Assembly: GCF_001194135.2 (NCBI RefSeq)
Contig: NC_069007.1
Span: 4,243,098 to 4,307,097 of the forward strand
DNA length: 64,000 nt
Direction of reading: 5' to 3'
Source of the DNA: Octopus bimaculoides
Lineage: Eukaryota
In this document: positions 3,826 to 64,000 of the stretch, in pieces
How the letters are laid out: the number at the start of each line of letters is the position of its first letter
Numbering within the stretch: position 1 is the stretch's first letter
The notes under the pieces: generated by a model
Database searches by the model: none
What the model was told of the DNA's origin: nothing
What the model saw: only the letters and a program-made list of their open reading frames with translations
Program-made: the position numbers and the translations under genes

Positions 3826-4023
3826 CCATATTTGCGAAAATACAATCAAGATTGAAAAATCTACAACAGCCAAATGTTCTGAATTCTATACCAAAGTTTT
3901 AGAAGGATATTTTCTGAATCGAACTGCATCAGAACTAACAAAAGTCAGCACTTCTGAGTTACAAAGAAAACTCCTTCAATGGCAGAAGCTCCCTGCTTCC
4001 AGCCCTGTATGTGTTTTCACCAA
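3826..4023 (+). CDS. Exon a1: EMI-like N-terminal part ([24 protein letters not shown]...PVCVFT)
   Basis: ttcttctttcag acceptor, gtaagt donor, phase 2/2, in frame with the next exon. Confidence 0.8.

Positions 4024-64000: not shown

Follow-up and report, generated by a model that had tools for sequence, protein, structure and literature searches.

What kind of protein is made from an octopus locus that public annotation has split under conflicting names, 'SCO-spondin-like', 'mucin-2-like' and an unnamed product of 4082 residues? The question is raised by a stretch of 64,000 nucleotides of Octopus bimaculoides (assembly GCF_001194135.2, contig NC_069007.1, positions 4,243,098 to 4,307,097 of the forward strand; 37.5% G+C), the whole of which is called the window here. 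SCO-spondin is the protein of Reissner's fibre, and an earlier note on this DNA (the original prediction) had read the gene as a hybrid of three designs, SCO-spondin, hemolectin and mucin. The present analysis leads to another answer, to which a probability of about 0.75 can be given: the window contains one O. bimaculoides-type gene from exon 2 to exon 35, together with the beginning of its mucin exon, and the product is a giant secreted glycoprotein that falls within the SCO-spondin family.

The protein would open with a signal peptide encoded outside the window, followed by an EMI-like domain, a single EGF domain, a Cys-rich module with the motif CY..C..CC..SW and the assemblies D1, D2 and D'D3, built of VWD, C8, TIL and E domains. 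After D3 come six LDLa domains, a short linker rich in proline, threonine and serine (PTS) together with a domain designated X, and a long Ser/Thr-rich tandem repeat that runs off the window end. Judged by its sequence, the N-terminal two thirds of the protein is SCO-spondin-like. Its relatives are the SCO-spondin-like proteins of protostomes that have no TSP1 repeats, a group in which it is to be placed and at least two members of which have been found in mollusc mucus.

The Exon Chain

The spliced model consists of 34 plus-strand exons between 3826 and 58843, which give 1816 stop-free codons; their phases agree and AG and GT stand at all 34 exon borders. It was built by placing 32 conserved peptide cores and enumerating every frame-keeping pair of GT donor and AG acceptor between adjacent cores, with exon 2, exon 9 and the acceptor of exon 10 (16845) set by tblastn with proteins P0017 (O. 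vulgaris), P0018 (Argonauta) and P0019 (another, more distant cephalopod). The exons are matched by the public octopus models P0001, P0002 and P0017, and the first of these (1383 residues) is identical to window translations over most exons (100% match). P0019 is a 531-residue open reading frame (ORF) that runs uninterrupted on a 1762-bp Logan contig (L004) and hence represents a spliced transcript; it tracks exons 2-13 except exon 5.

The chain drawn in the original prediction is borne out in its coordinates, and its starting point, 3826, is the first base of exon 2; the 34 exons and the PTS exon make up the 35 that it had counted. Its claim of phase consistency holds for the 34 exons up to 58843; at the junction between exon 35 and the PTS exon, the acceptor lies under an assembly gap. 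A signal-peptide exon was sought in positions 1-3825 of the window and was not found. In the O. vulgaris ortholog, a signal peptide is encoded by an exon 1 (product MRRCSPSLLFWGSVLLLYIAATPNLPLASA... in P0017) that lies 22 kb upstream of exon 2, which places the signal-peptide exon outside the window.

Eleven runs of N interrupt the window. The nine that precede 58843 are all intronic and hide no exon. P0019 is collinear through the junctions that bridge the gaps at 5192, 13441, 16105, 19039 and 21219; exon 9 (15743-15828), near the gap at 16105, was found in readable sequence, with which D1 is full length; the gap-free O. vulgaris locus (L001) has six LDLa domains, as does the window; and an alignment with six relatives contained no insertion of at least six residues shared by at least three of them within residues 1-1560. 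Of the other two gaps, the one at 61272-61371 immediately precedes the open frame of the PTS region, and the one at 61986-62774 is inside the repeat array.

The public model P0001 also holds stretches derived from intron read-through or repeats (window 20676-20744, 24636-24701, 28015-28145, 46349-46465 and 48415-48615). They break up TIL/E and LDLa domains, and the relatives are without them.

Domain Architecture

Pfam finds VWD x3, C8 x3, TIL x4, VWF-E x3 and LDLa x6 in the spliced protein and nothing further above threshold, in agreement with the three VWD assemblies and six LDLa domains read earlier from the sequence. The domains upstream of D1 fall below this threshold and are identified by comparison with relatives. 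Exon 2 (3826-4023, entry phase 2) encodes the first part of the EMI-like domain (HICENT...SSPVCVFTK) and exon 3 (8005-8066) its end; both rest on tblastn (P0017, P0018 and P0019 for exon 2), AG/GT borders and hhalign. The cephalopod domain follows the pattern HIC-x11-C-SEFY...-C-x13-CC-x-GY-x-G-xx-C. The Pfam EMI model does not match the window protein; it is also sub-threshold on genuine fish and tunicate SCO-spondins (E 0.13-0.21, over the last 23 residues only). In hhalign comparisons, the cephalopod domain aligns with the N-termini of deuterostome SCO-spondins at 85.5% probability (E 5.6e-6) and with those of molluscan SCO-spondin-like proteins at 99.3%, while the molluscan and deuterostome N-termini align with each other at 96.1%.

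Exon 4 (9802-9906) encodes an EGF-like domain (...GYRCE) that is sub-threshold in the EGF models of Pfam, is located by tblastn and aligns with the EGF domains of relatives. An EGF domain is present in mollusc, amphioxus and crinoid members of the family and absent from the fish and tunicate ones. The Cys-rich CY..C..CC..SW module occupies exon 5 (10638-10808; 171 nucleotides, phase 1-1). It has no Pfam match, and its motif recurs at the equivalent position in fish, tunicate, bivalve and octopus SCO-spondins or SCO-spondin-like proteins. The labels 'EMI' and 'TB-like' of the original prediction thus fail as Pfam assignments, but the segments they marked are homologous to conserved N-terminal modules of SCO-spondin, as hhalign and the shared motif indicate.

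P0019 lacks the exon 5 module, which is carried by proteins of Octopus, Argonauta, bivalves, fish and tunicates. Exon 5 could be a cassette exon, or could have been lost in the lineage of the cephalopod from which P0019 comes.

D1 begins with VWD1 in exon 6 (11741-11943; Pfam and exon model) and continues through exon 7 (13176-13278) and exon 8 (14705-14869), both placed by the exon model and tblastn, the latter with KGLCG and without CGLC. Exon 9 completes VWD1 (DDFITRENK...SLNP; tblastn with P0018 and P0019, splice enumeration). C8-1 starts in exon 10 (16845-16958; tblastn and splice enumeration) and extends into exon 11 (18559-18724), and exon 12 (20435-20675) carries TIL1 and E1; exons 11 and 12 are given by homologue matches and Pfam.

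Homologue matches define the exons of D2 and D', with Pfam support where stated. The end of E1 shares exon 13 (23592-23733) with the start of VWD2, which proceeds through exon 14 (25440-25757) and ends in exon 15 (26541-26702) with QGLCG and without CGLC. C8-2 is in exon 16 (28213-28444) and TIL2 with E2 in exon 17 (29836-30097), both also found by Pfam. D' consists of TIL' in exon 18 (32011-32206) and E' in exon 19 (33085-33176), with the end of E' in exon 20 (33957-34006).

D3 is laid out in the same manner. VWD3 occupies exon 21 (36039-36380; homologue match and Pfam) and ends in exon 22 (37502-37710; homologue match) with EGLCG; the two halves of C8-3 are encoded by exons 23 (39776-39909; homologue match) and 24 (41175-41284; homologue match and Pfam). 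TIL3 lies in exon 25 (42303-42452), the donor of which (G/GTAAG) was derived from P0001, and E3 in exon 26 (43710-43803; homologue match).

The LDLa block follows D3 directly and takes up exons 27-32. Exon 27 (45619-45776) joins the end of E3 to LDLa 1, and LDLa 2, 3 and 4 each have an exon of their own (exon 28, 46806-46919; exon 29, 48730-48852; exon 30, 49316-49432), as have LDLa 5, with atypical spacing (exon 31, 51035-51145), and LDLa 6 (exon 32, 52874-52990). Exon 31 is supported by a homologue match and Pfam, the other five by Pfam and the O. vulgaris locus. A micro-exon of 33 nucleotides (exon 33, 54003-54035), present in both P0001 and P0002, forms a linker to exons 34 and 35, which encode X and are treated below.

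No TSP1 repeat accompanies these domains: the motifs WSxW, WxxWxxC and CSxxCGxG are absent from all six frames of the window, and the spliced protein has no TSP_1 Pfam match. The statement that the gene lacks TSP1, made at the outset, therefore holds for these 64 kb. The CysD/WxxW motif, sought across the window, which ends inside the PTS region, is likewise absent.

Family Placement

An exhaustive HMMER search of 1.84 billion representatives was made with the last 1200 residues of P0001, which include some intron read-through. By total score, multi-VWD proteins such as FCGBP rank first. The matches of highest identity (36-42%), each in a single long alignment that starts in D2/D' and reaches the end of D3, are nearly all named SCO-spondin or SCO-spondin-like. 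They include an octopus paralogue (P0031/P0169, 42%) and proteins of Mya arenaria (41%), Potamilus and Argonauta, and, among deuterostomes, those of the crinoid Antedon, the starfish Asterias, Branchiostoma, Styela, Ciona, shark, sturgeon and teleosts.

The 325-residue D3 unit, used as a query by itself, gives a graded series. The octopus paralogue scores 415-419 bits, other molluscs 331-342 and the SCO-spondins of deuterostomes (chordates and echinoderms) 283-321; then come an amphioxus mucin-like protein (278), a Saccoglossus mucin-like protein (228), Limulus hemocytin (212), vertebrate MUC5AC/5B (184-191), MUC6 (146-152) and a VWF-like protein of amphioxus (122). In a neighbour-joining tree of 316 columns with 200 bootstraps, the window D3 falls into a molluscan SCO-spondin-like group (75%) that adjoins the deuterostome SCO-spondin group (91%). 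A clade of invertebrate mucins and hemocytins is sister to the SCO-spondin groups, and vertebrate MUC5 and MUC6 lie outside. Grouping of D3 with MUC5 or VWF had been named in advance as the outcome that would speak against SCO-spondin kinship; D3 both scores and clusters with SCO-spondins and SCO-spondin-like proteins, not with MUC5, VWF or hemocytin.

A further character separates the families. To multimerise, VWF needs the vicinal-cysteine motif CGLC in its D1 and D2 (Mayadas and Wagner, 1992, cited after PMC7333891). The window protein carries KGLCG, QGLCG and EGLCG and has no CGLC in D1 or D2. The motif is missing from D1 and D2 in all ten SCO-spondin or SCO-spondin-like proteins checked and is found in D1, D2 or both in every MUC5, invertebrate mucin-like, VWF-like and hemocytin sequence checked; its absence as a family criterion is derived here, from the sampled sequences.

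The octopus protein thus shares with chordate SCO-spondin the EMI-like N-terminus, the CY..C..CC..SW module, the D1-D2-D'D3 series without CGLC in D1/D2 and the LDLa domains directly after D3-TIL-E, and chordate SCO-spondins provide the nearest D3 sequences outside the protostome relatives. It differs in that an EGF domain follows the EMI-like domain, as it does in the amphioxus and crinoid proteins, and in that X and a long Ser/Thr-rich repeat stand in place of the TSP1 region, TSP1/SCOR repeats being absent from the window and, on its Pfam record, from the next O. vulgaris model with its 4082 residues. The SCO-spondin-like D1-D2-D'D3 and LDLa series that the original prediction had recognised is upheld by the D3 scores and tree, the EMI-like and Cys-rich modules, the position of the LDLa block and the lack of CGLC. 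Three simple characters, no CGLC in D1/D2, an EMI-like domain with a Cys-rich module, and LDLa after D3, may serve to tell SCO-spondin-type D assemblies from those of the mucin/VWF type.

TSP1-less Relatives

The layout is shared by other protostome proteins. Pfam finds three VWD and three to seven LDLa domains, and no TSP_1, in seven of them: the octopus paralogue P0169, P0037 of Mya (3056 residues), P0054 of Potamilus (3551 residues), P0114 and P0104 of the rotifer Seison, P0125 of the annelid Owenia, and P0101. Motif counts show the same layout, without TSP1, in Argonauta and many TSP1 motifs in all long deuterostome members. The models of TSP1-less relatives include ones of 2281, 3056 and 3551 residues. 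The homologues compared (Mya XP_052794204.1, Potamilus streckersoni KAK3603587.1, Octopus sinensis XP_036361565.1, which is P0169, and those of Seison and Owenia) have the EMI-like domain, EGF, D1-D3 and three to seven LDLa without TSP_1; they differ from the octopus protein in sequence (31-42% identity) and in the numbers of LDLa and X units. The Mya protein (P0037) continues after its LDLa block with PTS repeats of the TTAPGTAV type, and the Potamilus protein (P0054) with PTS and repeats of a Cys-bounded domain.

A mollusc protein of this kind has been described from mucus. P-vulgata_3 was found in the pedal mucus of a limpet, whose pedal sole expresses it (Kang et al., 2020, PMC7333891). 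By its published description it has three vWFD domains, C8, TIL and five LDLa and no TSP1; it differs in that neither PTS nor X is reported and in its length of 1604 residues, which lack a start codon (PMC7333891). It is homologous to the first third of SCO-spondin only, and two origins were proposed: either SCO-spondin was re-purposed for mucus and adhesion and its TSP1 repeats were lost, or an adhesive protein was ancestral and grew longer afterwards (Kang et al., 2020). In Lang et al. (2016, PMC4948705), invertebrate mucin-like proteins cluster with SCO-spondins, and a run of LDLa domains that follows D3 directly is the feature by which SCO-spondin is separated. The octopus paralogue P0169 (A0A7E6F2Q3) is in the skin-mucus proteome of O. 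vulgaris, which also contains a 6208-residue 'Mucin-2-like isoform X1' (A0AA36F9F6; 91 peptides, 36% coverage; PMC11431876 supplement).

The idea of a three-design hybrid peculiar to this gene is not tenable: its layout recurs in the octopus paralogue, in Argonauta, in two proteins each of bivalves and rotifers and in one of an annelid. It is in print for P-vulgata_3 (PMC7333891) and, in its main lines, for mucins of invertebrates (PMC4948705). This is not a new kind of protein, a TSP1-less SCO-spondin-like mucus protein of limpets and SCO-spondin-like invertebrate mucins having already been published, and a description of the full layout of the octopus gene was not found in the literature. 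The TSP1-less form is widespread among the sampled protostome gene models and can bear a mucin tail.

The X Domain

Exon 34 (56835-57268), to which P0002 maps, carries the short PTS linker and the first part of X, which is probably all-beta; exon 35 (58709-58843; homologue match and AG/GT borders) carries the second part (...DIHGCFEP) and exits in phase 0. X has about 140 residues, with one Cys at its start and another in the terminal ...DIHGCFEP. It had been taken for an 'FA58C-like' domain, and this identification finds no support. X matches nothing in Pfam at E up to 10 and nothing among PDB sequences (phmmer), and against an alignment of F5/8-C domains (Limulus hemocytin, fish SCO-spondins and a mucin of the flatworm Macrostomum) hhalign gives a probability of 0.65%. 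An AlphaFold2 (AF2) model made from a three-sequence alignment is all-beta with nine strands and of low confidence (pLDDT 50.7, pTM 0.49); with this poor model, Foldseek returns no match at E <=0.001, and its weak matches (TM 0.35-0.49) are to C domains of factors V/VIII, DDR2, CUB and other jelly-rolls. The only match in a word-indexed homologue search is one octopod genomic contig. X is an unclassified, cysteine-bounded and, on the predicted fold, probably all-beta domain; a discoidin-like fold, although conceivable, is unsupported.

The hemolectin component of the supposed hybrid depended on this unverified discoidin domain. Even a true discoidin domain would not argue for hemolectin, since fish SCO-spondins carry F5/8-C domains as well. 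Another comparison is with Potamilus, whose P0054 follows its LDLa block with ten or more Cys-bounded domains, each 123-145 residues long, separated by PTS linkers and ending in GC(F/Y)EE. Octopus X aligns with these repeats from end to end in hhalign, at 41.7% probability, and at the level of sequence the two may be related.

The Mucin-like Repeat and the O. vulgaris Locus

The tandem repeat is readable in two parts on either side of the gap 61986-62774. The first (61374-61985, plus strand), whose acceptor would lie under the gap 61272-61371, has 204 open codons with 45% S+T+P; the second (62777-64000, plus strand) has 408 codons, open to the window end, with 48.5% S+T+P and units of 23-24 residues. 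The repeat units measure 69, 72 and 144 nucleotides, and all spacings are multiples of three. T makes up 21%, S 18-20% and P 6-8% of the residues, and Cys is absent. The PTS region of the original prediction is thereby confirmed as 612 open plus-strand codons with 45-49% S+T+P and no Cys. The open frame differs between the two sides of the gap 61986-62774, which is uninformative either way, gap lengths being estimates. The repeats are assigned to the plus strand on the orientation of the gene, their mucin-like translation and the homologues, and we infer that the PTS exon is joined to the rest of the gene.

In O. vulgaris the locus is annotated as three genes, with products of 380 residues ('SCO-spondin-like', P0017), 907 residues ('mucin-2-like isoform X1', P0002) and 4082 residues, the last with no Pfam match on record. 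The second split between genes lies within a tandem triplication of the two-exon X unit, at 40677-42331, 44605-46173 and 48788-51181 of L001; the window has a single copy at 56835-58843. The third model begins at a Met just upstream of X copy 2 and so joins X domains to the long Pfam-less tail. The X unit of 569 nucleotides enters in phase 1 and exits in phase 0, so that splicing one copy directly onto the homologous acceptor of the next would break the frame; the O. vulgaris units may be mutually exclusive alternative cassettes. The single copy in the window could conceivably be a collapsed repeat of the assembly. Window sequence past exon 35 aligns with the sequence past X copy 3 of O. vulgaris, and L001 stops about 0.5 kb before the PTS exon of that species.

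The last exon of P0002 is short and hydrophobic (VFLFVILHILVFLEEKFFSPDYLL). It occurs in L001 at 43322-43471 and 47150-47299, and a counterpart follows the X unit of the window at 59752-59916. This exon may be the true end of a short isoform or a prediction artefact at a repeat boundary.

Alternative Readings

Several points weigh against the reading of the window as one SCO-spondin-family gene with a mucin tail that forms polymeric mucus. The splice from exon 35, in phase 0, to the PTS exon is not visible, as the gap 61272-61371 covers the acceptor. A minus-strand ORF of 674 codons (61939-63963), rich in D, V and P, is open antisense to the PTS repeats, and a test of third codon positions does not separate the strands, since the open plus and minus frames share their third position. 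P0002 ends 24 residues beyond ...GCFEP, just after X, so that a short isoform without PTS is possible. The node uniting molluscan and deuterostome SCO-spondin D3 units has 58% support only. The C-terminus lies beyond the window, and TSP1, VWC or CTCK domains could still be encoded far downstream. The mucus evidence concerns a 42%-identical paralogue and a limpet relative rather than this gene, and multimerisation would be expected only by analogy with VWF, mucins and SCO-spondin.

The first three of these points, and the three-gene annotation in O. vulgaris, would fit a gene that ends after X, with the repeat at 61.4-64 kb being a separate gene, a minus-strand gene or a non-coding minisatellite. 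That is unlikely, given that the O. vulgaris split falls inside the X triplication and its third model joins X copies to the Pfam-less product; moreover, a PTS linker already shares an exon with X, the repeat spacings are multiples of three over 612 stop-free plus-strand codons, and the Mya and Potamilus homologues have PTS after LDLa within one model. A canonical SCO-spondin, with TSP1/SCOR repeats and CTCK past the window and the PTS as an insertion, would agree with an architecture that is that of SCO-spondin up to the LDLa block, with a window that stops inside a repeat array and with the existence of a separate limpet mucus protein bearing four TSP1 domains and a cystine knot (PMC7333891). 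It is nevertheless quite improbable: there is no TSP1 motif in 64 kb, the 4082-residue downstream product of O. vulgaris has no Pfam match on record, and TSP_1 occurs in 0/7 protostome relatives.

The public name 'mucin-2-like' implies an orthologue of vertebrate gel-forming mucins of the MUC2/MUC5 type. These share D1-D2-D'D3 followed by PTS, fish and frog mucins are the top named matches of the word-indexed search, and the PDB matches are MUC2, MUC5AC and MUC5B, whose solved D assemblies are the best structural templates. Against such orthology, which is very improbable, SCO-spondins rank higher per domain in the exhaustive search and vertebrate MUC5/MUC6 lie outside in the D3 tree. The gel-forming mucins (MUC2, MUC5AC, MUC5B) and VWF, more distant in D3 (184-191 bits, and 122 for the VWF-like protein), have CGLC in D1/D2, where the octopus protein lacks it; CysD domains interrupt the PTS of the mucins, and no CysD/WxxW motif occurs in the window; and the six LDLa, the EMI-like domain and the Cys-rich module are foreign to them. 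A clotting protein of the hemolectin/hemocytin type (VWD with discoidin) is scarcely credible. Hemolectin and hemocytin are also large secreted invertebrate proteins with several VWD domains, their clade, with the invertebrate mucins, is sister to the SCO-spondin clade in the D3 tree, and X, the weak fold matches of which include factor V/VIII C domains, probably forms a beta sandwich. Yet X has no F5_F8_type_C match at E=10 and an hhalign probability of 0.65%, whereas hemolectin and hemocytin have true F5/8-C domains; Limulus hemocytin, which is without LDLa, carries Mucin2_WxxW repeats and a CGLC in D1; and its D3 reaches 212 bits, compared with 283-321 for SCO-spondins.

Proposed Mechanism and Implications

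If the window does encode a SCO-spondin-family protein with a mucin tail, its D assemblies would pack the N-termini together in the secretory pathway, where disulfide bonds would join them into multimers or fibres. As in SCO-spondin, multimerisation would proceed without the CGLC isomerase motif of VWF and mucins. The LDLa repeats may bind calcium and ligands, and the Ser/Thr-rich repeats, once O-glycosylated, would hold water and hydrate the polymer. The secreted polymer could be a mucus, an adhesive or a matrix thread. By analogy with the octopus paralogue and the limpet relative, it may act in mucus or adhesion.

A broader proposal is offered tentatively: protostomes may keep a SCO-spondin lineage in which mucin repeats and an unclassified beta domain take the place of TSP1 behind the N-terminal polymerising module (EMI-like, D1-D3 and LDLa), the whole being released into surface mucus. 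Should this be correct, X would represent a new domain family common to cephalopods and bivalves. SCO-spondin is expressed in an annelid (Helm et al., 2017, PMC5543218), and the idea that Reissner's fibre is a remnant of a mucociliary sole is discussed in the same paper. If the TSP1-less mucin form of protostomes were the older state, an epithelial polymer that served as mucus or adhesive would be the source of the Reissner's fibre protein, which would fit that idea. The spread of the TSP1-less form among the sampled protostome gene models bears both on the origin of the Reissner's fibre protein and on the builders of mollusc mucus and adhesives. For a locus so far divided among public names, the analysis provides a gap-checked gene model.

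Repeats in the Introns

A microsatellite of the (GAT)n type in intron 8 (14991-15461, plus strand) creates a poly-Asp ORF of 157 codons. P0018, the Argonauta model, likewise opens with a run of poly-D, apparently an artefact of annotation. Copies of about 370 nucleotides that resemble short interspersed elements (SINEs) occur in several introns, for example at 17289-17656, 26070-26448 and 57797-58167, and are 80-93% identical to many sites of the O. vulgaris locus.

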